NCBI GenBank assembly: GCA_047495785.1
Contig: JBLDXI010000029.1
Coordinates: forward strand, 2,976,001 to 3,040,000
Source: Lepidodermella squamata
Taxonomy: Eukaryota; Animalia; Gastrotricha
Reading direction: 5' to 3'
Length of the DNA stretch: 64,000 nucleotides
Below, one piece after another: positions 1,220-19,982 of the stretch; position 1 is the first letter of the stretch, and each line of letters begins with the position of its first letter. The notes below the pieces were generated by a model. The model searched no databases, was not told the DNA's origin, and was given only the letters and a program-made list of their open reading frames with translations. The position numbers and the translations under genes are program-made.

Positions 1220-1907
1220 GAAATTTGCATGGGCCTTGCTGAAATAACACACTGGGGATCGAGAATACCAATTCATAGGTCCTGAACTGCTTGGAGCTTT
1301 CAGGTATCAATGTTTGTGGTAATTATGCGCTGGAATTTAAATTTATATAAGAATACCGTTAAATTATGTTACATCGCCATTTTTTATTGATATTCCAATT
1401 GAATGCTGGTGTGAAACGCGCCGTATCTCGCTCTTTCGAACGGTATAAAATGTATAAGAATAGGGCTAATACATCCGGAGATGATGACGGTAAAAACTTG
1501 TGAAAATAATTTTTGTTGCGCGCAAAATGACGCTTTTAATTTTACATTTTTCTCAAAATGTGAAAAAAATTATCTTTAAACGTCTATATACGCGATAACT
1601 ACGTCATTCTGAGGTATTTTGTCGAACGGTTTTCACCTATGGATTCGGGATGTCATGGCCAACAACCCCATGTACTCATCTGGAAATGTGAAAAAATTCG
1701 CCAAGATACACGTTTCACTTTGCAGCGGTCAAATGTTCAGGTCTGAAGTTGATGTTCAAAACCAAATGAAAAGTTCAAAAACGAATTTTCCCATTAAATT
1801 TCAATTTTCTTCAGTTTTCAGTGCTTGAACCATAACTTGGGAAGGTGTTTCGTCTCAATATCTCTTTTTTTAGAGAATTCAGAAAAAACAGGCGACAATT
1901 AAGAAGT

Positions 1908-4163
1908 TTAGATTTCATTTATTCTCCAAAATATAATTAAAAACATGATGCTAGAATTAATTTCCATTTTCCCAGAACAACTCGCTAAAATCGGAATTTT
2001 CGGCGCCAAAATGTCCACAGATCGCTGCTGATTTGTCGCCAATTTTCTAGTCGATGTCGTATAAAATCTCGGATAGCCACTTGAAACTTCATTATTTTGC
2101 GTTGTAGTTTCGGGAATTTCGGACGAAAATTCATAATCCAGGGGTTCTTCTGGAGAATCCATGCCGTAATTAGTCGCTGAAATAGCGTTGAAAATCGCGC
2201 TATTAAATCGCGGAACAACAATTAGGTCATTCAATTGCTGTGTCCCACTTTCAGGCGCGCACAGCGCATTATTGCGCGCACTACACCTGCAGCCAATCAG
2301 CGACGCGCCTCGGCCCAGCAAAACCTGAACCATCGCCTCGCGATCTTCACAAGCCGCCCATATAACAGCCGTTCGATTGTACAGCGAATCTCTCGCATGC
2401 AAATCCGCACCCCGAGCCAGTAATAGCTGCGCAATTGCGAGCCGACCCCATCGCGCGGCTAATATTAAGGCGGATTGTTTATAGCCGTAGTCAGGGTACA
2501 GCTCTTCCTCATTCACCGAGACGTAGCTTGAGTCGAGAAATGAGGCGACAACTTCGATCAAATCAGCTCGAATCGCGTTGAAAAATGCCGATTTTAGCGC
2601 GTAAGGATTGACCTGGTTCAAGGGACATATCGCCTGTAGGGTGCCTAGTCGAGTTAGGGTGATGAGGTAACTCGGGTCCGAACAGTCTCGAACAGCTGGT
2701 GGGAACAAAAATCGGGCGGGATTCGATGCTGATAACATAGGCGGGTAATTCGGGTAAATAACAGGTGGATAAGCATTATCATCAATTGTTCGAGTTGGAA
2801 TCGGTCTCGGGGTTGTATCAATAAATTTAATGGTTGAAATTGGCATTAAATTGCTTCGAACTGTTGCGGCTCGGGTTGAAGTTGTTTGAGGCGAATTTTG
2901 AACCCGAATTGTCGGTCGAGGGGTACTTTTTACCAATGGTCCTAAATATTGACGAATCCACGGAATAACTCGACAAATTCCTTAAAAATATGAAATTAAA
3001 TTTAAATTTAAAAAATATTCAAAATTCAAAAATTCAGTGTTCAAATTATTGAAATTTTAAAATTTTAAAAATTCAAAAATTGAATTTTAAATTTTGAAAA
3101 TTGGCTTTTTGCCAACAATAAAACATACTTGAATAAACCGAAGGCTTTTCGCCTCCAGTTTCATTACAAGCCAAATGACCGTAGGAGGTAAGTGCCAGTA
3201 GGTACGGCTGGTTATTCGACCCTAGACAAGTCAAAGGTCCGCCAGAATCGCCGCGGCACGTTTGCTGGTTCGGACCGCCAGTTGCGCATATTTTCGCATC
3301 CGTGAAGTAGTCACCCTGATAAGTGAGCGCGCACTGGAGAAACGGTGCCATGTTTAGCGAAATTTTTTTCAGCCTCATTGACATGTAATCGGATGGGCCC
3401 GTCAATCCTATTTAAAAATAAAAATTGATTATAAAAAAAGATAAAAAATTAATTCAATTAATTCAATTTTGAAATTTGAATTTTAAAATTCGAAAAAATT
3501 GAGAACTTTTATTTTTTTCAAGCCATACCCCAGCCGACTGATGTCCCTTTCCAGCATGAATCGATTGTAGACGAAAGTAGGTCATAGTCATTATCGCAGT
3601 AATTATCGGGCAAATCAATAGGTTTTATCCCCATCGAAAGCGAAACTGGGTAATTAAGGCGTAACAGGGCAAAATCGAAATCAGTATTAGCACCGGGCCG
3701 ATAGTAAGGATGCACGTGAATGTCCCTATCTGAGACTAATCTAATCGCCTCGCCTCGCTCAGTTGTACTAAGATCAGTTTTCCCGAGGATAACTCTTGAC
3801 CTAATTATTGAAATTTTATTATAAAATTAATTAATTAAAATCGAGGTCATGGTACCTAATTGCTGTTTCTCGGCCTGTTGAGACACAATGCCCGGCTGTG
3901 ATGACCCAATTGTCCGAAATTAGGGCACCGCCGCACACAAATGTGTCAACGCCTGGGACATCGCTATAAATTCGAACCTAAATTTCATAATTTAAATTTT
4001 TTAAATTTTTTAAATTTTCAATATATACCATCCATGGAAATTCGAACCGTTGAGCAAACGACCCGCCTACAACGAGCGGGCCGTAATTTGTTGTTAAATT
4101 CGACGATTGGCATTCACAAAATGAAAATAAAACAACAACTAGCCATCCAATAAAATTGATCAT
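1908..4163 (-). CDS. S1 (chymotrypsin-fold) serine protease fused to a Pro/Thr linker, about 3 ankyrin repeats and a hydrophobic C-terminus; ~626 aa
   Basis: Exons 4163-4029, 3977-3856, 3800-3529, 3407-3129, 2980-1908, all GT-AG and frame-consistent. Signal peptide, activation site L|VVGG, CGGALISDNWVITAGHC (His), DFALLRL (Asp), GDSGGPL (Ser), VYSRICRVIPWI. The last exon continues into ANK motifs (QSALILAARWGRLAIAQLLLARGAD; RTAVIWAACEDREAMVQVLLGRGAS). Confidence 0.88.
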
Positions 4164-4466
4164 AACGGCGCCTCGAAATCTCAGCAATTCTTCATCACCC
4201 CATTCTGACGTGAAATTAATAAAACATTTTTTTTTAATGATTTTTTGTGTGTGAAATTAACCAAGGTGCCAATGCGTGATAAAACTTGGAAAAACCTCGA
4301 GTGACTCTCAGAGTAGACATAATAAAAAAAAATTGCCGAGTGCTGACCGAGTTGAATTATAAAAAATTGCATTTTATTGAACGTACAAAAATCAAAATTT
4401 AAATTGTGTTTATAACATTTTGCTGGTAAATTTCATAAATTAAAACAAAAACTGGATTTTATTTTG

Positions 4467-5936
4467 TCAATTTCGCGCCTCTTGTTTGGAATAGGCTTGA
4501 AGGGTAGAAGCATTCAGGATCAGCTCGTCGTAACTCGGAGGTCGACTCGAATTCACCGCTGTTTCGCCCAGCGTCGAGGTGAAATCACCCGTTGTCGCAC
4601 CCTGGGACCTTGAAGTCATCGCCTGCGAGTCAAAGGTCGCTCCAGTTACTAAAATCATAAAAAAAGTTTATATTAAAAAAATTGACCTAATTTATGACAA
4701 ACTAACCGGTTAGTTCAGGCGGGTTATTTCTCCGCCTCGGAACAGCCGGGGAGAGACTTGACCTTAAAGCCTGGACATGCCTGCGGTTGCGATACCTCTG
4801 AACAACTTTCCAGCTCAAAATAGCCGTAGCGCAGCATGAGAAGAAAGAGAGCGCGAAAACGTATAGCACCTCGGCATTACTCGCCCTTCGACGGCGAGGC
4901 GGCCGTTGGCTGGCCTGGATCGGGGCGGTTTCGGCTGCCAACTCGAATTCGGTTGTAGTTGCCGTGGTTGTTGTTGTAGCCGGCGATGTTGGCGCAATGG
5001 TCGATTTAATCAAAGGAGTCACAACGCCTCGACAAAAATACTTTCAAAAAATGAAAGATTATTTAATAAAAATTTCAATTTCAATTTAAAAATTTTCAAT
5101 TTAAAATTCTGAAATAATTTGAAAAATTCATTTTAGATTAAAAAAATTTTTCGAATAACTGATAATTTTTCTGAAGTTTTTTGTAATTTTTTGAAATTTT
5201 CCGAAATTTTTGAAATTTTTACCTGAATCGATCGACCTGATGCGTGAAAATCGACGAAATCATCCACCTCGCCAAAGTACTCGGCACTTGCCTCCGTTTT
5301 CCGGCTAAGAAAATGCTTGGCCGACTTGCCGTCGTGAAATTGCCACGCCTTCTGCTCAACAGCGTGACTGAGCGTGAAATTTCGCTCCAGCCTCACACTA
5401 CGCCCTAGCAACGACTCGACAATTGTCTCAAAAATTGGTGAAGCGTGACGGCGTGACGTGCAACTTGTCGCAGCTCGGGCCGGCAGGGTGTTCACAGTTA
5501 GATCCGGGCGTAAAATTTCCAACGGTGAACAAGCGCCGAATAACCGCCGCGCAAAACACTGAAGCGCGAAATTCGGCAATTTTATTAAGGTGGGCTTTTT
5601 TTCGTCACGCGTAATTAAATCGCCGCACAGATAAGTCTCACGCGTATCGATTGTAAGGGCCTTGTGAATCGACTCGGCAGCTTCTGGCATCAATCTCGCG
5701 AGTAACTGCTCGAAAATTTGCGGCGATTGATCGGCAATTAGCGATAGATGACCCTCCGTTCCGCATGGCTGGCTTTCGGATAAACTGTTACGTTGAATCG
5801 AAACAATGCCGATAACATAGACAGATTTTATCGCTGAAGAAGTCGAATTTCTCGCAGATTCGGTCACGGTTGAGTTACTCGCAATAGAAATTTCGGGATG
5901 ATAAAATATCAACAATAAAAAACTGAGAAAAAGCAT
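4467..5936 (-). CDS. Uncharacterised type-I single-pass membrane protein (~409 aa): Cys-containing ectodomain, Thr-rich stalk, TM helix, cytoplasmic PPSY motif
   Basis: Exons 5936-5223, 5040-4707, 4648-4467 with canonical splice sites. Signal peptide MLFLSFLLLIFY; TM VLYVFALSFFSCCATAILSWKVV followed by basic QRYRNRR; tail RPPSYDEL. Confidence 0.8.
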
Positions 5937-6131: not shown

Positions 6132-9100
6132 ATGATACGTTTTTTACTTTATTCTTTGTTGTTTTTTGGCGCCTCGTTAGCAGACGAATTCGACTTGAAC
6201 TATGATGACACTGATACTTCAACGACTGCAACTCATCCGGTTACGACAATAGAAATTTCCACGACCACCTTAATTACCGAAAAAATCGAGGTTTAATTTT
6301 GAAGTTGTGAATTTTCGAAATTTAATTTTTTTCAATTTAATAGCCGAAAACATGTTTTTTGCCCGCCATTGAGAATGGCGAAATTGAGTTGCAAGGCGGT
6401 AATAATGAAGGTCAAGCTGTGCAAGGTTCAATAATTCGGCTGATTTGTATTTTCGGCTTCGAATTGGTCGGAAAACGCGAATCGAAATGCGTTAATGGAA
6501 ATTTCACGCCGGCACTTGGGCAATGTGTTGAGCTTGAGACTACGACTACAACTACGATTACTGAAGCTACGACGGCTGAAGAAGCTGTGCCTGAAGTCAC
6601 GGAACCTATTTCGGCTAAAAATATCAAAGTCGAAGCCGAAAAATCTGTCAATGTAAATTTTCATAATTTTCGTCAATTTTAATCTTTTTTCATTTTTCAA
6701 AAATTTAAATTTCGAATTTTTCTTGAATTATCAGTGTGCTATGCCGCCAATTGCGAAGGGTCATTTCGAAATTGTGGGAGTTCAAACCAGTGATGAAACT
6801 CTAGAAATCAATCATGGTGTGAAAATTCGGCTAATTTGCGAGCCTGGCTACACAACTTTGGGCACGAATCTAACCGAGAGCCTGTGCTTCAACGGCGTGT
6901 TATTCCCACAACCCGGCCAATGCGTAGACGCTACGACAACAACTCTAGCTCCACCTATGGTTCGTTTTTAATTTAATTTTTTTTTAATTTTATGAAAGGT
7001 TTTACTTGATTGCATTTGCCTGAAATTTGGAATTTTTCGAAGAAATTTCAATTTTTTTTCAATTTTTTCACAAATTTTCAAATATTTCGCAAAATCAATT
7101 AATTTCAATAATTTGAATAAAAATCTTTAAATTTTAAAAAAATCTGGAAAATTTCAATTTTAATTCATTTATAGTGTCTTCATCCTGTTGTTGCTAATGG
7201 GAAACTCGAAATCCCTAATGATGCGGATTCACTAGATTACGACCTCCATAGTGATCATGAACTTCAAAGCCAACCAGAATTCGTACCAATCGGAACCAAG
7301 TTGCGACTGACCTGTTCACCCGGTTATAAATTACTCGGCGGTTCCGAGTTGCTGTGCTACAGCCTTCATCATCAGCCTTCAGCCAGCTGGTTCCCACTAC
7401 CCGGCCGATGTATCTCGATCCCGACTACAACCACCCAGCAACCGGTCGCTTGCAAATGGCCGTCGGTGAGTGGCGGCTGGTGGTTGGAAGAGGACCATCC
7501 GGATCTGCTGGAGGCAATGGGCGAGAACCACCTGTCGCCTGTCGGTACCGTTTTGGTACTTCAATGCTCGTCGGAAAATTTCGAAATTATCGGCAGCAAA
7601 CGAATTTTTTGCCGCGAGAATTCGCAATGGTTTCCTGAACCTGGAAATTGCAGCCAAGGTAAACATATTATTTTCAAAAATCAAATTGAGATTTTCCGAT
7701 TTTTTTCAAATTTTCTTCGATTTCAATTTTTCTATCCTTAAACAATAATAATTCACCATATAGCTCTGGCATATATATTTTAGCAACCTGATAACCTAAG
7801 GTATGAAGAAAATTGTTCGATGTAGGATTCCCTAACTGCTGATATCGGAAAAATCACTGATTTGTAAAATCGATAACTGGAATCGATATCGGCTTCGCAG
7901 ACTCAAGTATGACTCATAATCTGACTGCCGATAGCGCAAATTGCGCGTAATAATGAGACCTATGGGCTAAACATTCAAAATTTAAATTTGACGCAAATTT
8001 TAAAAAAATTGAAAATTAAAAATTCGAAATTTGAATTTTTAATTTTTTTTTCGAGTCATTACCACTACAACCGAATCGCCATCGACTACGCAAGAAGTTC
8101 GCTGTCAGCTGCCATCAAGCGGCATAGGAAAGCTCTCAATCGATCACTCGAATCATGAGACATTCGAAAGTGTCTCATTATACTCTGAGATCACCCTGAC
8201 CTGCCCTGATAATTACGTAATCACTGGCGCGAATCGGGTCATGTGCGTAGGCCGCAACCAGCTATTCCCCGAACTCGGCCAATGCGTACCTGAGCAGACC
8301 ACGACTACTACAACAACAACCGCTACTACTCCTACCGAAACGACGACCATTATCTATTGCTCGGTGCCGCTTGTAGAAAATGGGCGTTATGATCTGTCAA
8401 GTGAAGATGATCCTATGAGTGTGTTGCCGGGTCGGAAAATTCAACTGACTTGCAACCCAGGCTACCAACCATCTGGGCCGAGTTCTAGCTCGATTTGCAT
8501 AGCTGGTGGCAACTGGTTCCCGAAAACTGCTGATTGTGTTGAAGGTAAATTAAATTTTCTCTTAATTTCAATTTAAAATTGCAATTTTTTAAAAGTGACT
8601 ACACCCGTTCCGCAAACGACGGCTAAAATCGTGCTACCTAATGACCGACTTTCTGGCGGTGAGAAATTTTGCAATGTCCCAACTTTGTCAATTGGGCGCT
8701 TTCGTGATGCGCAATATTTCGAAATTACGGAGGAAAAGCTACCGCTGGGTACCGAGATGTCGCTGGATTGCCCGGACGGGTATGACGCAGTGGGCGCTGA
8801 TCACGTGATGTGTGCCGATGGCAATAAATGGTTCCCGCCTACAACGGAGGCGAATTGCGTGCCGAGATCTACGCCTTCGGTGAGGATTAATCCGGAAAAT
8901 GTTGGTGCGAATTTTGAGACGGAGACAGCAGGGTGCGATGTCCCAAAAATTAGTACAGGTAATAATCACGAGTGTCATCAATTTTATTAGCTGTTAATAT
9001 TTTTTATTAGTTCATTAGACTATTTAAAATCACTTGAAATTAGCCGATTTTTCGCTAGATTGCCTGACCTAATAAATTTAGCAAAATTAAAACTTGTGTG

Positions 9101-12100
9101 CGCGTTCGAAGAATTCTTAAGAATTTTTCGACGGCGCGCGCTGACGTCAAAGGGCTACTTTTGAATATTTTGGCGGTTTTCATACCAAATTAAAATTCAG
9201 AAAATTCCCTATCGATTGAATATAGGGTTCTCGCGCGAAAAAATCAATGGGAACATTTTTTACGCACACGCTAAATTTCGAGCGCGCGAAGGAATAACGC
9301 ACTTAATTGACTCACAAATTTCGAGTGCGCTTACATTTTTTCCCATTGTATTTTTCGCGCGAGAATATTCAATCCCTATACTCAATCGATAGTGAATTTT
9401 CTGAACTTCATTTTAGTATGAAAACCGACAAACTATTTGATAATTGCCCTTTGACATCATTAGCGCGCGTTGAACGTGTCGAAACCTGGTTTTTTCTTCT
9501 CAATTGATGTCATTTATTTATTTCCAAGCTAATTGTTTTGTTAAAAGGTGATATTTTTCTATATTTTTTCCTCAGGTTATTACGCGGCCGATGGAGTTGT
9601 TAAAAATGTTGCTGTTGGCACCGAGTTGCACTTGACGTGTAACGAAGGTTATGAGGTGCCTATTACACATGGAACCATCAAATGTGTCAATCACAACACG
9701 TTTTTCCCTCTACCTGGAGAGTGCGACCTGCGTAGCACTGCTGTAGCAGATAAAGTTACTGCTGAGGACTCGAAAACGATTTATTGCGACGCACCAGTGG
9801 TCGAACATGGCAAATTTGATGGATATTCAGACCATGGGGCAAGTTGAATTATTCTCTATTTTCTTATTTTTTTCCAAATTGAAAAATTGAAAATATTTGA
9901 AGTGAAGAATTGAAAATTGAAAATTTTATTTATTTTTATCAATTTTAGTATAATGATAAAATTAAACTAGGGGAATTTTCTCTTTTTTGTCCATTTAAAA
10001 TCCAGTTTATTATTTTAATTTTTTTTATTTAGGCAGAGAAATTACCTCTCGGCACTGAATTGTGGCTAAATTGCGACGAAGGTTACGTCGCTACAGGCGC
10101 GACCGAAATTCGTTGTGTTGGCGAAAATGATTGGTTCCCAAAAGCAAAAGGAACCTGCGAGGTGATAGCAACAACGACCAGGACTACTATTTCTACCCCA
10201 TGCTCGAAACCGGTAATTGAAAATGGATCCTTTAAAATCACAAAGCCGAAGGATACAACGGCGACGATCGACGATGAATCATTGCCGGCTGGTCACGTGA
10301 TTAAGATCAAATGTGACCCGGGTTATTTCAATTTCGGTGCAACGTCCAGTATCTGCCTGGATTCGGGTGACTGGTTTCCAAGCTTGGCAACTTGCCAATT
10401 GCGTAAGCAAATTTCAAATAATTTAAATTTCGAAATTTAAAATTTAAAATTTAAAAAATTTAAAAATTTTAAATTTTGATTTAAATCATTTTCGCTAAAT
10501 TTTTAAAATTTGAATTTTTTTAGTTACGACTACTTCAACTCGAAGCCCACCTACGACACAAAAGGCCTATTGTTTACTGCCCAAAGTCGAAATCGGGCAA
10601 CTTTCCCGTGATTTCAGCCCCCTTCTCCCCGAATTCACCTTAAGCGTGGATGTTGGAAGCGAAGTGTCCCTGTCATGCCCTGATGGCTACATTGTCCAAG
10701 GCTACAGTGCAGTCATGTGCGTCGCCCAAGGCCGTTATTACCCTCAGGAACTTGGCCGATGTGTGCCGAGACCTAGCCCGACTACTACACCAAAACCGAC
10801 TCGAGTTTTTTGCGTCCTACCCCAGGCTGGAAATGGCCGCGTTGTCGCAGAGGAAAATTCGGGTGAAAATCAACAAGTTGGCCAGAAAATTCGGGTGATT
10901 TGTAACGATGGTTACTTACTGTTCGGCTCTAATTCGTCAATCTGCTTACCCGATGGCAAGTGGTTTCCGGATCTTGGTCAATGCGGAGAAGCTCCTGAAG
11001 GTAAAGGAGCATTTTGATTGAAAACATTTGAAATTTGAAATTAAAAAATTTGAAAATTCAAGAAAGTGAAATTTTGTAAATAATATAAAAATAATTTAAA
11101 ATGACCATTTTCGAATTTAAAAAATTCGAATTTTGAATTTTTTAAAATTTGAAATTGAATTTGAAATGAAATTTCGAAATTTTTAATTTTTGAAATTTTA
11201 TGTCAATCTCTGATTAATTTTCAATTTTCTTTCAATTTTTACATTTCTTTGTAAATTCAGAACTCGTTCATGAGGCTTCCGAATTGAGAAATGCGATTAC
11301 TGCTGGGGAATTGAGCGATGTCAAGAACATCTTCCGACCCTCGCTAAGTCCAGATTTCGCTAAATACCTCGAAACCAGCCGAGACCACGAGCAAAACGAT
11401 GAAACTCTAACAATGCGAGCGGCTGAAAGCGGGAAACTCGACGTTTTGAAATACCTGGTCGAAGATCGCAACATCGACCCGACTACTACAGACCGGCTTG
11501 GTCGAAACGCGTTGCACATTGCGGCGAAAAATTGCGAAAATATCGAACTGTTAAAATATCTCGCTCAACGAAATCCCGAGATGATCGAGGCGAAGGACGA
11601 CGAGTCGGGCAAAACGCCGCTTATGTATTCGATTATTAACGATAAATTGAGCTGTGCTGTTGAGCTGGTCAAGCAGTTTTCGGCTGATGTTGACGCGACT
11701 GATGGCGAGAAATGGTCGCCGTTACATTTTGCGGCTCAAAATGCCTCAAAAGCTATCGTCGCCTTTTTGTTAGCAAAAGGTGAGATAATTCTGAACAATT
11801 ATTTTAAGGCGGCCTTTTTAATTTTTAATCCTAATTTTTTCAATTTTCCTCATAATTTTTGAATTTTAATTAAGGTGCTAAAACTCGAGTGAAAAATCGC
11901 GACGATGACCTTCCAATTCATATCGCGGCTAAATTTGGCAACAATGGCGTGTTAGAAATATTGCTATCTCGTGACAGTGCGTTGCTAGAAGAATCTGGGT
12001 CACACGGCGCGACGCCCCTAATTAGCGCGGCCGAATCAGGTCAACTGCGTGTGGTTCAATTGCTGCTAAACGCGCATGATGCGAATATTGAAGCGCGGGA

Positions 12101-13698
12101 TGACACGTCGAGAACGGCTTTAATTGCTGCAGCGATGACTGGCCATCTTTCTGTGGTTAAATTTCTGGTGAAGAAAGGAGCGAATTTGAAGGCGGTTGAT
12201 GCTGATGGCAACCAGGCTGTTGATCTAGCTAGGTCAGCTGGCCATGGTGACGTGGCAAATTTTCTCCAGCAACAACTTGGTAATATTGCTCAAATTGTCA
12301 TTTTACCTGAAAAATACCTTTTCCATTTTTTTCGAACAGCTCCAATCGAAATGGTGAGTATTAAGATTTTTGAAAAAATCACCAAATTGGAACCTAATTG
12401 GAACCAAAGTTCATAGTCTGGAATATCAAACTTGGAAAAAATATTCATTTTCGAATAATTTTTGTTAAATGAAAATTAGCCGTATGTTCTGAAGTTGACG
12501 ACATGCTAAAATTCACGCACAATTCATGATAATTTATTTAAATTTCCCAAATCAGTTAAAAATTGATTTGGCTCCGCATTTAACGCTTGAAACTTCTTTC
12601 TTACTAAATTTTATTCTTAATGGAATTAATTTTTATTTTTTTACTTAAATTTTAGTGCGAAGTGCCTGTTGTAGCTAACGGTGCGTTTTTCGCGATTTCC
12701 GCGCCCGGCAAAGAAAGGGAGGTCAAGAATCCGACCCGGCTCAAAACTGGTTCCAAGCTGGTTCTCAAGTGTATCATCCCACTCGTTGTTGAAGCTGAAG
12801 CTGGGCTAACCTGTGCCGGTCCCAACACTTGGCAACCCCAGCCTAGCAAATGCATCAGCGCTCCAGCAGGTAAATTTTAAAAATATTTGTAAATAATTGA
12901 ATAAATTTAAAAAAATGTGAATTTTGTAAATTTATCAGAAATTTAAATTTAAATTTAAATTTTAAATTTCATTGCGATTTTTTACATTTTTTAGAACTCA
13001 AAGCCACCATGAAATCCTTGCGTCAGGCAATCGCGGCTAAAAATCTGGCCAAGGTGAAAGAAATCCTGGAAAATCCGCAACTGGACGATTCCCGAATCCG
13101 ATATTTACTCGACAGCCGATCGGAATTATCCCCTTATCGCACCTCGTTAATGGCCGCATGCCGCATCGGCCATTTGCCCATTGTTCGGTATTTAATCGCT
13201 GAGAAATCGGCAAATTTCGAAGTTCAAGACGGCGCGAAAGGCGACACGGCTATGCACATCGCCGCCCAGGCTGGTCGTTTAGATATCGTACAATATTTAT
13301 CCACCTTAATGACGTCAGAAAAGCACTCGCTAGCCGGCGCGAAAAACGACAAGGGCGAAACGCCGCTGCATTACGCAGCTCAATCCGGCCATTTGGAGGT
13401 TGTCAAATTCCTAACCACCCTGCCCGATGGTGATGGCCGGCATTTGGTCGATGTTGAAGCAGCGGATGAGCTGGGCAGGACGCCGGTTATGTCGGCGGCC
13501 TACGCCGGTCACGTGGCTGTTGTTGAGTATTTGATTGGTGAGAAGCACGCGGATGCGATGAAGCGTGACAAGGCTGGTGATATGGCTGTTCACCTGGCGT
13601 CGTATGGCAGCAAAACGGCGGTTGTCCAATTTTTGTTCAACAAATTTCCGGATCTCAAGAATGTGAAAGGCGCGTATGACTACGTCGCCAAAGCTTGA
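6132..13698 (+). CDS. Secreted protein of ~1664 aa: signal peptide, 12 sushi/CCP domains with Thr-rich linkers, ankyrin block, 13th CCP, second ankyrin block
   Basis: 14 exons: 6132-6290, 6344-6652, 6735-6959, 7175-7658, 8056-8544, 8596-8958, 9576-9838, 10033-10402, 10524-11000, 11261-11779, 11875-12279, 12340-12353, 12656-12869, 12995-13698. Phases are consistent (4995 nt). CCP pattern C-x-x-P-x(3)-NG...L-x-C-x-x-GY...C...W-F-P-x(3-4)-C. ANK motifs such as GETPLHYAAQSGHLEVVKFL. AATAAA at ~13738; no TM segment seen. Confidence 0.88.
9128..9474. mobile_element. Long imperfect palindrome (MITE-like) in intron 6 of the CCP-ANK gene
   Basis: Arms of ~150 bp, e.g. GCGCGCTGACGTCAAAGGGC / GCCCTTTGACATCATTAGCGCGC and CTATCGATTGAATATAGGG / CCCTATACTCAATCGATAG. 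Confidence 0.75.
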
Positions 13699-18017: not shown

Positions 18018-19010
18018 ATTTTCAAACAGCTCCAATTGAAATGGTGAGTACTGAAGCCCTTAGAAAATGGCAAAATTCTTAAAAATCAGGCAAACTTTCA
18101 TGGTTACATCATAGAGAAAAAAATGACCAGAGGGTGAGCAAAGAAGCTAACATTTTGGAATTTCCATCTTTATTCTGCCCGTTCACCAAATTTTGCATGC
18201 ATAAAGAACGCGAGCTGTTCTTTCACGTTGCTCTTTCACGTGGCAACCCAGCCGTATTAATTCACACGATACAAGAAAGCAAAAAACGATACCACGTGAA
18301 AGAGCAGCTCGCATGCGAAATTCGGTGAACAACGGAGATATCCGATTTGAGAAAGTCAACTTTGAATAAAGATGGAGATTCCAAAATTTTAGCTTGAGTG
18401 CTCACTTTGGTTATTTTTGTCTCTATGTCTCTTACATAATATTCATGTCGATTTTCTAAAATAATCCAGAAATTCCTAAAATTCTCCAATTAATTTGGTT
18501 CCGCATTAAAGTTCTTTCTACCCAATTTCAGTCTTAATGGAATTTATTTTTGTTAGAAAATTGCAAATATTTCGAAGTGCATTATTCCATTGGCTGTTGA
18601 AGCTGAAGCTGGGCTCACTTGAACCGGTACCAACAATTGGCAACCACAGCTCCAGCACGGCTATGCATATCGCCGATGTTGAAGCGGCGTATGAGCTGGG
18701 TATGAGCCCTGTTATGTCGGCGGCTCTAACCGGTCACGTGACTGTTCTTGAGTTTTTGGTTTATGAGAAGCACGTGCATGCGATGAAGCGCGACAAGGCT
18801 GGCGATATGACTGTTCGTAAGGCGGTTGTTCACTTTTTGTTCACTAAATTTCCGAATATTAAAACTGTGAAAGGCACTTATAACTACGTTGCCATAGATT
18901 CGACTTAACTTCGGTTGGCAATGTCGAAAATACAACGCAATTCGATTGTTTTGCTTGTTAGGCTTTATTTTAAAAAATTGTAGGAATTCCAACAATTTGA
19001 ACCTTTGCAA
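18018..19010 (+). pseudogene. Duplicated, internally deleted 3' end of the CCP-ANK gene (micro-exon, part of CCP13, last ANK repeats, 3'UTR)
   Basis: CAGCTCCAATTGAAATGGTGAGT matches 12337-12359; GCTGAAGCTGGGCT...GGCAACC matches exon 13; PVMSAALTGHV...KRDKAGDM matches 13480-13700. Confidence 0.85.
18110..18427. mobile_element. Palindromic MITE (ends CATAGAGA.../...TCTCTATG); same family as 32612-33163
   Basis: Long inverted arms; absent from the parental intron at 12354-12655. Confidence 0.8.
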
Positions 19011-19056: not shown

Positions 19057-19982
19057 TCAAGGGCCAGCGCTGCACATTTCAATTGTCAGTCCGTAGAGGG
19101 AAACTGTTTCAGGTGTCTTGGCATTTGGGTTGTTGCTAATGGAAAAGCAGCAAGCAGCGTAGGTTAAATAGCTAGAGCCTGGCATTCTTTTGGCCTGTTA
19201 AAGTGAAAGCGGTTGATAATGAGAAGAAATCAGGTCTTAAAATGTCTTACGAAATCGGAATTTGAGTTTAAGGCGTCTGTTGGCACTGAAGCCGTGTTCG
19301 GGAAGCGTACGCAGGTACCCTTCGAAGCGGTGGCACAAGGTGGGGCTGTTATTGCGTATGGATTATTAATCGTTGCCCCGACACAAATCGTCGTTGGAGG
19401 AGATCCTGTAATAACAGCTGGCTCGTAAAAGACATTAGCACCCGTTTGTGCGCAGCACAAGGCGAAAGTGCCGAAAGTGCTGGGTGAACTCGAAAATGAC
19501 TATGAAACATGAAAATTAAGCATTACCAACTCAACATGAATGGTTATACTGTGCCACCGGTCAACAGGTCGCAGGATCCGGCGTTGGCGAGGCAAAATTT
19601 AGTTCCCGGCGTGCCAACTCCTGGACCGCCAATCGTATCGATTTGACATAGATTGAAAACAGGCTACATTGTAAAAATAAAATTAAGAATTTCCTGAAAT
19701 TGTTTAGATCCTAACCGCGGTCATGCAAGATTTAGTCGCATCGGTACAGGCCTGGGATGACGTAACACACACGTTTGGCGATGGGCAAGTGTTGGCTGAA
19801 GTAACGCAGCTTGAACCAGGCGAGCATGTTGGCGACGGGCTAGGCGAGTTGGATGCTGGTACAGAAGGGCATGGCGTTGTAGTAGTGGTCGTCGTTGTTG
19901 TTGTTGCTACTGTTGATGATGCTGGGCAAGCGCTGCCATCGGCGAATATGACCAGGAAAACGGCGAAACTAAGAATTAACAT
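19057..19982 (-). CDS. Secreted Cys-rich family protein, divergent subfamily, copy B1 (intact, ~255 aa)
   Basis: Exons 19982-19716, 19663-19550, 19499-19251, 19194-19057, all phase 0. Signal peptide ending DGSA|C; poly-Thr; FALCC, GTCVRFPNT, YAACC, YGLTIEMC. Confidence 0.85.

Follow-up and report, generated by a model that had tools for sequence, protein, structure and literature searches.

Positions 4163-1908 of the window, by which the whole analyzed stretch of 64,000 nucleotides (nt) of the gastrotrich Lepidodermella squamata is meant (contig JBLDXI010000029.1, positions 2,976,001 to 3,040,000), are predicted to hold, on the minus strand, one intact five-exon gene encoding a serine protease of the S1A family with a C-terminal module of ankyrin (ANK) repeats. 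The reading favored here, which is considered rather probable, is that of a secretory-pathway protease in which a cysteine-flanked module of three ANK repeats, borne on a flexible Pro/Thr tether of about 80 residues, would be held as an exosite. The same fusion of domains is found in an orthologue, P0071.

Gene structure and the orthologue P0071

The gene model was read from the minus strand of positions 1800-4400 (Table 1). The exons sum to 1881 nt, that is, 626 codons, and are separated by four introns of 51, 55, 121, and 148 nt, each of which begins with GT and ends with AG. The GC content of the introns is 8-18%, while that of the exons is 40-51%. No in-frame ATG precedes the one at 4163; the upstream ATGs at 4203 and 4195 run into stop codons within a few codons. 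At the other end, the final codons overlap with an AATAAA (1923-1918), and past the gene end stops appear in all three frames within about 15 nt. Exon 5 constitutes a 357-codon open frame of 46% GC, and none of its 60-nt windows between 1950 and 2940 falls to intron-level GC, so that it contains no hidden intron. The sequence-only reading had placed the end of the protease domain, the linker, and the ANK repeats in this one exon (2980-1908), and the single open frame without an intron-like dip in GC bears this out. Its further claim, that the fusion is not an artefact of gene modelling, is upheld by the single exon here together with the same architecture in one intron-free open reading frame (ORF) of P0071.

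P0071 is a protein of 563 amino acids from ENA metagenome contigs, where it is found at the loci L001, L003, and L004, with an allele that has an early stop on L005. It was retrieved by an exhaustive representative search with exon 5, to which it corresponds in a single stretch (query residues 22-234, 43% identity); the database and profile searches with the window gene were run exon by exon, with the exons unjoined. In Pfam, P0071 is matched by Trypsin at residues 38-288 (4.5e-43, 148 bits, profile positions 2-220) and by Ank_2 at residues 390-481 (2e-15). It is encoded by one uninterrupted 563-codon ORF on contig L001, and the fusion there is therefore independent of splicing. Like the window protein, P0071 has a hydrophobic N-terminus, an activation site of the form YG.L/[VL]VGG (YGWL/LVGG, with YGPL/VVGG in the window protein), an S1A domain with Gln189, a Pro-rich linker, a three-repeat ANK module with six cysteines and an NRT glycosylation sequon, a Ser/Thr stretch, and a hydrophobic C-terminus. 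It differs in the lack of introns, in the shorter linker and post-ANK stretch, and in the tail, where 14 hydrophobic residues, LFAYLVSLLIVLSF, are followed by SKYCHH, whereas in the window protein there are 8, followed by RINEI.

The exons are exactly collinear with P0071. Residues 27-45 of exon 1 correspond to P0071 residues 33-51, residues 1-39 of exon 2 to 52-90, residues 2-90 of exon 3 to 94-187, residues 3-92 of exon 4 to 191-279, and residues 1-232 of exon 5 to 281-486, with nothing missing or extra at the splice junctions. The three codons that are split by introns are those for Arg, Gly, and Arg, and P0071 has R92, G188, and R280 at these places. From this collinearity and the matching split codons, all four splice junctions are validated without recourse to RNA. 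The neighboring gene is conserved as well, since a 408-amino acid ORF next to P0071 matches positions 4488-5828 of the window (tblastx, 6.6e-26); the two loci are therefore regarded as orthologous, albeit with the neighbor inverted relative to the protease gene at the P0071 locus in comparison with the window.

The degree of conservation varies along the protein. Identity to P0071 is 38-62% by exon (best BLAST segment), with 74% over 19 aligned residues for exon 1. Among the protease exons it amounts to 61.5% for exon 2, 43.6% for exon 3, and 53% for exon 4; ANK repeat 2, at 70%, is the best-conserved stretch of the protein, and repeat 3 stands at 44%. The linker is 26% identical and contains insertions and deletions, the post-ANK stretch is 17% identical with 45 gapped positions, and the tails have 10% identity, their common trait being the hydrophobic character. 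Given the 70% of repeat 2 beside the 44-62% of the protease exons, the ANK module is at least as constrained as the enzyme. Within P0071 itself, four alleles of at least 90% identity (L003, L004, and L005 included) differ at 20 codons by synonymous changes only, at 8 by amino acid changes, and at 1 by a nonsense change; the pairwise ratios of nonsynonymous to synonymous substitution rates (dN/dS) are 0.07-0.20, and judged by these sequence comparisons the P0071 locus is under purifying selection.

Table 1. Predicted exons of the protease-ANK gene and the regions encoded by exon 5 (window positions)
Feature	Positions	Strand	Content and basis
Exon 1	4029..4163	-	ATG at 4163; signal-peptide-like N-terminus, propeptide, VVGG
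Exon 2	3856..3977	-	Protease, His57; Pfam Trypsin 2e-08, profile 24-46
Exon 3	3529..3800	-	Protease, Asp102; Pfam Trypsin 5.5e-08, profile 51-111
Exon 4	3129..3407	-	Protease, Ser195; Pfam Trypsin 6.5e-10, profile 136-210
Exon 5	1908..2980	-	357 codons: protease end, linker, ANK, tail
Exon 5 start	2940..2980	-	Last 13 protease residues, ICRVIPWIRQYLG, with Cys232; aligns with P0071 from residue 281
Pro/Thr/Ser linker	2694..2939	-	Exon-5 residues 14-95; composition and AlphaFold2 disorder
ANK module	2259..2693	-	Exon-5 residues 96-240; Pfam Ank_2, AlphaFold2, structure matches
Ser/Thr/Pro-rich post-ANK stretch	1974..2258	-	Exon-5 residues 241-335; disordered (AlphaFold2), poorly conserved
C-terminal tail	1908..1973	-	Exon-5 residues 336-356; stop TAA 1910-1908

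As a side observation, GC content differs so sharply between introns (8-18%) and exons (here 40-57%) that the 60-nt GC profile by itself traces the exon map of 1908-4163; such a profile would be of help when further genes of this genome are modelled.

Protease domain, linker, and ankyrin module

The protease domain is spread over successive exons. Exons 2, 3, and 4 reach 34.8, 33.3, and 39.6 bits with the Pfam family Trypsin (PF00089; cut-off 20.6 bits), and their matches cover consecutive parts of the 220-position profile. The catalytic triad, which the sequence-only reading had described as intact, is indeed read in the motifs TAGHC, DFALL, and GDSGGP of exons 2, 3, and 4, respectively, with the codons for His57 at 3890-3888, Asp102 at 3676-3674, and Ser195 at 3246-3244; the Ser motif aligns with those of TMPRSS13 and NGF-gamma. 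The best sequence matches of exon 4 in the PDB are TMPRSS13, kallikreins, and factor XI. Ten cysteines are found at the positions of the trypsin pairs 42-58, 128-232, 136-201, 168-182, and 191-220, the same as in P0071. Cys42 and Cys58 are encoded by exon 2, Cys128 and Cys136 by exon 3, and Cys168, Cys182, Cys191, Cys201, and Cys220 by exon 4; the five of exon 4 were placed by alignment and the others by reading, and the pairing is a predicted one.

In two respects the domain departs from trypsin. The alignment to the TMPRSS13 chain 6kd5_B puts Gln189 (codon 3264-3262) into the S1 pocket, with Q-T-C in place of the D-S-C of trypsins; both the window protein and P0071 have Gln189-Thr190 and thus lack the Asp189 of the subgroup with trypsin-like specificity. 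The specificity is therefore not expected to be trypsin-like, and "trypsin" denotes the fold only. At the activation site, the propeptide ends with YGPL, and cleavage behind it would expose VVGG as the N-terminus (V31, codon 4073-4071). The residue before the cut (P1) is Leu in the window protein and in P0071 instead of Arg or Lys, from which it follows that the activator would not be trypsin-like; Asp194 is present.

The linker comprises 82 residues, of which 20% are Pro, 13% Thr, and 9% Ser, with the three together accounting for 41%. It is followed by the ANK module, for which exon 5 gives Pfam matches to Ank_2 (PF12796; residues 141-226, 1.8e-13, 51.3 bits against a cut-off of 27.3), Ank (PF00023; 39.3 bits, cut-off 21.1), and Ank_3 (PF13606; 26.6 bits, cut-off 22.3); Sushi/CCP or any other non-ANK module was not matched on exon 5 in Pfam at E values up to 1. 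The module, numbered here by exon-5 residues, consists of an N-terminal helical cap with Cys99 and Cys118, three ankyrin repeats with helix pairs at 125-149, 165-188, and 199-222, and a C-terminal hairpin with the motif CxC(x7)C at 230, 232, and 240. The repeats contain Cys210 and the NRT sequon at 201-203, which replaces the G-x-T of the ANK consensus. The NRT sequon and all six of the cysteines (two in the N-terminal cap, one in repeat 3, and those of the hairpin, CxC(x5-7)C) are common to the window protein and P0071. In alignments of generic ANK proteins, Cys occurs at these positions in 3-15%.

An AlphaFold2 model, which the sequence-only reading had proposed as a check, was run on exon 5 and yielded an ordered ANK core. 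Residues 96-233, with a predicted local distance difference test score (pLDDT) of 57-88, form a helical cap and three helix pairs, and the top structural matches of this core are all ANK proteins or designed ankyrin repeat proteins (DARPins), with Z scores of 10.7-8.0; the designed three-repeat protein 1n0q is matched with a Z score of 9.5 and a root mean square deviation of 2.6 over 81 residues. On either side of the core, the linker (pLDDT below 50 over residues 11-95) and the post-ANK stretch (below 50 for residues 234-341) are modelled as disordered.

A further observation on exon 5 concerns the motif SA[FI]FNAI[RS]A, which occurs twice, at residues 130-138 (2570-2600) and 259-267 (2180-2210). 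The first copy lies at the first ANK helix, the second in a disordered post-ANK insertion that is absent from P0071. This second copy may be what is left of a partial duplication or of a fourth repeat that was lost.

Topology, proposed mechanism, and alternative explanations

The N-terminus has an 11-residue hydrophobic core, IGWLVVVLFSF, followed by CECQ/SS, and the signal peptide claimed by the sequence-only reading is thus seen again as a predicted, signal-peptide-like segment. Beyond it, no 19-residue window reaches membrane-span hydrophobicity, the best value being 1.52 within an ANK helix, and the claim that the protease and the ANK repeats are not separated by a transmembrane segment agrees with this hydropathy scan. 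Because of the hydrophobic N-terminus, the ten protease cysteines, and the lack of an intervening membrane span, the ANK module would almost certainly share its compartment with the disulfide-rich S1A domain. The hydrophobic C-terminus that had also been claimed is present, though short. The tail begins with the small residues ASCSG and continues with a 7-residue spacer, the 8-residue run IMFLIIFW, and RINEI before the TAA. Its best 9-residue Kyte-Doolittle window is 2.58, and no window of 15 or 19 residues qualifies; exon-5 residues 335-355 are modelled as a helix with a pLDDT of 61-66, and the final 42 nt are AT-rich (23-25% GC). A glycosylphosphatidylinositol (GPI) signal combines small residues at the omega site, a polar spacer, and about 10-20 hydrophobic residues at the very end of a protein with an N-terminal signal peptide. 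Judged from the tail of the window protein, membrane attachment of the protein of this gene is possible, yet on the whole unlikely.

In the proposed mechanism, the N-terminal hydrophobic segment would direct the protein to the endoplasmic reticulum, so that the protease and the ANK module would share one side of the membrane, extracellular or lumenal. The zymogen would be opened by cleavage after the Leu of the conserved site YG[PW]L / [VL]VGG. Gln189 would, together with Gly216 and Ser/Gly226, confer a non-tryptic specificity, perhaps a chymotrypsin- or elastase-like one, and with a pocket of this kind self-activation after Leu would be possible. The six conserved cysteines of the module would form disulfides that stabilize the ANK fold outside the cell, and the Pro/Thr tether would probably be O-glycosylated. 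The groove of the ANK module would then serve as a tethered exosite that keeps a substrate, or a partner for docking, close to the active site. With the sequence-only reading, we infer a role of the ANK repeats in targeting or substrate binding, and the 70% identity of repeat 2 supports a binding role. Finally, the short hydrophobic C-terminus may give membrane attachment, as a GPI signal or an anchor, which would be more credible in the orthologue than here.

Several findings weigh against a tethered exosite of this kind, and they bear mainly on the indispensability of the ANK module and on the tail. In the allele on L005 (7596-9290), GAA is replaced by TAA in codon 413, which lies directly ahead of the conserved ANK repeats. 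The sequence downstream of this codon is otherwise almost unchanged, and the change would thus be recent or an assembly error; the stop may mark a real protease-only variant or null allele, or it may be such an error, and it is the chief evidence for an ANK part that may be dispensable. Moreover, allele differences within the ANK module are few (4 synonymous, 2 amino acid-changing, 1 nonsense), and the tail of the window protein falls short of the length of a membrane span and makes a weak GPI signal.

The natural allele that stops before the conserved repeats would fit an explanation in which the ANK repeats are a regulatory or removable region that serves in autoinhibition, folding, or sorting and is cut off in the linker to leave the protease alone as the mature enzyme. 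The disordered 82-residue linker between the domains would offer room for such a cut, and many S1A zymogens shed their non-catalytic parts. On reading the linker, however, no dibasic or other recognizable processing site was found, and the conservation of repeat 2 above that of any protease exon is better accommodated by a specific binding surface; removal of the module is accordingly judged improbable. Retention inside the cell shares with the favored exosite reading the evidence that the protein enters the secretory pathway, and the sequence does not separate secretion from retention. The protein would then act in an internal lumen, such as that of secretory or digestive granules or lysosome-like organelles, or in the gut lumen of digestive cells, with the ANK module binding a lumenal partner. 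Many invertebrate S1A enzymes are indeed digestive, but an ending of the KDEL type is lacking, and the Ser/Thr stalk with its hydrophobic C-terminus, clearer in P0071, resembles a surface-tethering layout. A lumenal site of action is therefore considered to have a low probability.

That layout leads to the proposal of a membrane-tethered protease, which could be combined with the exosite reading and in which the C-terminus would function as a GPI signal or, for P0071, as a single-pass anchor. Both proteins end with small residues, a spacer, and a hydrophobic run even though the tails themselves have diverged; the 14-residue run of P0071 follows a Ser/Thr-rich stalk, and the tail of the window protein is modelled as a helix. 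The run in the window protein is only 8 residues long and fails in the longer hydropathy windows, however, and the polar or charged residues that close both tails (5 in RINEI, 6 in SKYCHH) are not usual for GPI signals. In addition, the AT-rich final 42 nt overlap the AATAAA, and the hydrophobic codons may reflect base composition. Tethering by the C-terminus is thus a tentative proposal, of which we remain doubtful. Least probable by far is that the gene is a modelling artefact or a decaying pseudogene, with separate transcripts for the two parts or an ANK frame that is open by chance. A long exon-5 frame of exon-like GC beside introns of 8-18%, an Ank_2 match at 1.8e-13, the same fusion in an intron-free orthologue ORF under purifying selection, and four junctions exactly collinear with P0071 all speak against it, and this explanation is close to refuted. 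The preferred reading therefore remains that of a protease of the secretory pathway with an ANK exosite.

Rarity, known systems, and neighboring genes

The sequence-only reading had expected that the combination of Trypsin and Ank would not be common, and P0071 was the sole protein to combine them in three database searches. As the claim of rarity rests on absent relatives, an exhaustive representative search was run. Among its best 150 matches to exon 5, which are mostly long multi-repeat ANK proteins, a protease part was found in P0071 only (a Pfam scan covered 37 of the matches, and the whole 150 were compared to the protease exons by blastp). When 5.8 billion clusters were searched with the whole of P0071, PF00089 and ANK occurred together in P0071 alone among 83 matches at E values up to 1e-20, and P0071 was likewise alone among the 14 matches obtained with its C-terminal region (residues 289-563) as the query. 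A word-index search with exon 5 (proteins of 196-623 amino acids, a range that ends just below a full-length protein of 626) gave generic ANK proteins only, and a search of the ESM Atlas with exon 5 gave generic ANK clusters only. What these searches show is rarity and not uniqueness; remoter relatives may rank below 150 or lie outside the word index.

Some candidates were rejected as relatives. The locus L002, from a scan of metagenome DNA with the alignment of exon 5 and P0071, is an AT-rich contig whose ANK match is generic, while P0003 and P0001 have ANK similarity at the level of the repeat only. A weak exon-2-like match at 19308-19397 turned out on inspection not to be a protease. Apart from this, the reading frames of L002:1-2123 are rich in in-frame TAA and TAG, and a multi-pass membrane ORF is found there; this DNA may use an alternative genetic code.

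In the literature searched, no description of a trypsin-ANK fusion was found, and the phrase "extracellular ankyrin" was met in a review of latrotoxins only. The genome paper of Lepidodermella squamata mentions neither ankyrin nor trypsin.

Ankyrin repeats belong to the most common binding scaffolds and are normally intracellular; very few natural ANK repeats are known to work outside cells. The latrotoxins, spider-venom proteins with long ANK arrays, resemble the window protein in presenting ANK repeats in an extracellular setting, and alpha-latrocrustotoxin (7ptx) is among the structural matches of the core with a Z score of 8.5. They have no protease and about 20 repeats, however, and the similarity is one of the ANK fold only; they are also not known to have a classical signal peptide. 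On the protease side, prostasin (PRSS8) and testisin (PRSS21) are GPI-anchored vertebrate S1A proteases. With the window protein they share the single S1A domain, and the signal peptide predicted for it and its putative hydrophobic signal C-terminal to the catalytic domain have counterparts in them, but they have Asp189 and no ANK repeats, and the tail of the window protein is a much weaker one, placed about 340 residues past the protease. Binding modules joined to an S1A domain are also known from the mosaic proteases of complement and coagulation (MASP, C1r/C1s, factor XI, and the TMPRSS family), in which they act as exosites. Theirs are N-terminal modules of classic extracellular types (CUB, CCP, apple, LDLa, SRCR), in contrast to the C-terminal ANK repeats found here.

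In a more far-reaching scenario, which is speculative and held to be improbable, the ANK fold would have been refitted for extracellular life, through disulfides that staple its cap and hairpin and through a sequon in the binding loop, and would serve as a recognition module of serine proteases in this lineage. The present short, possibly membrane-tethered form without CCP would then be one arm of a diversified recognition-plus-effector system, for example, in defense or in the handling of prey or microbes. If this were true, it would be a system comparable in logic to the MASPs of complement, yet built from ANK. From an ANK module that evolved naturally to be secreted, it could be learned how the fold can be stabilized under oxidizing and glycosylating conditions. 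What is at hand is a protease-borne ANK module with conserved cysteines that is kept by purifying selection in two divergent organisms, and it has a bearing on the rules of domain shuffling, on how protease exosites evolve, and on the engineering of DARPins. With its compact three-repeat ANK, the protein may be used as a test case for protease-ANK proteins.

Upstream of the protease gene, and on the same strand, the neighboring gene occupies 4467-5936, with ORF pieces at 5133-5936, 4702-5022, and 4467-4658. A signal-like N-terminus and a hydrophobic segment are among its features; for the 408-amino acid counterpart ORF there is no Pfam match on record. Judged by the gaps between the ORF pieces it contains about 2 introns in the window, beside the 4 of the protease gene, whereas at the two-gene locus of the relative (L001:3162-6692 and L004:4044-7574, corresponding to window positions 1908-5936) both genes are free of introns. 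Elsewhere in the window, sushi and ANK ORFs are seen in a predicted sushi-ANK gene at 6132-13698, 2 kb from the protease-ANK gene. An ANK-like ORF on the plus strand (18537-18908) is very similar to the terminal ANK exon (13009-13698) of that gene and is probably a duplicated fragment.

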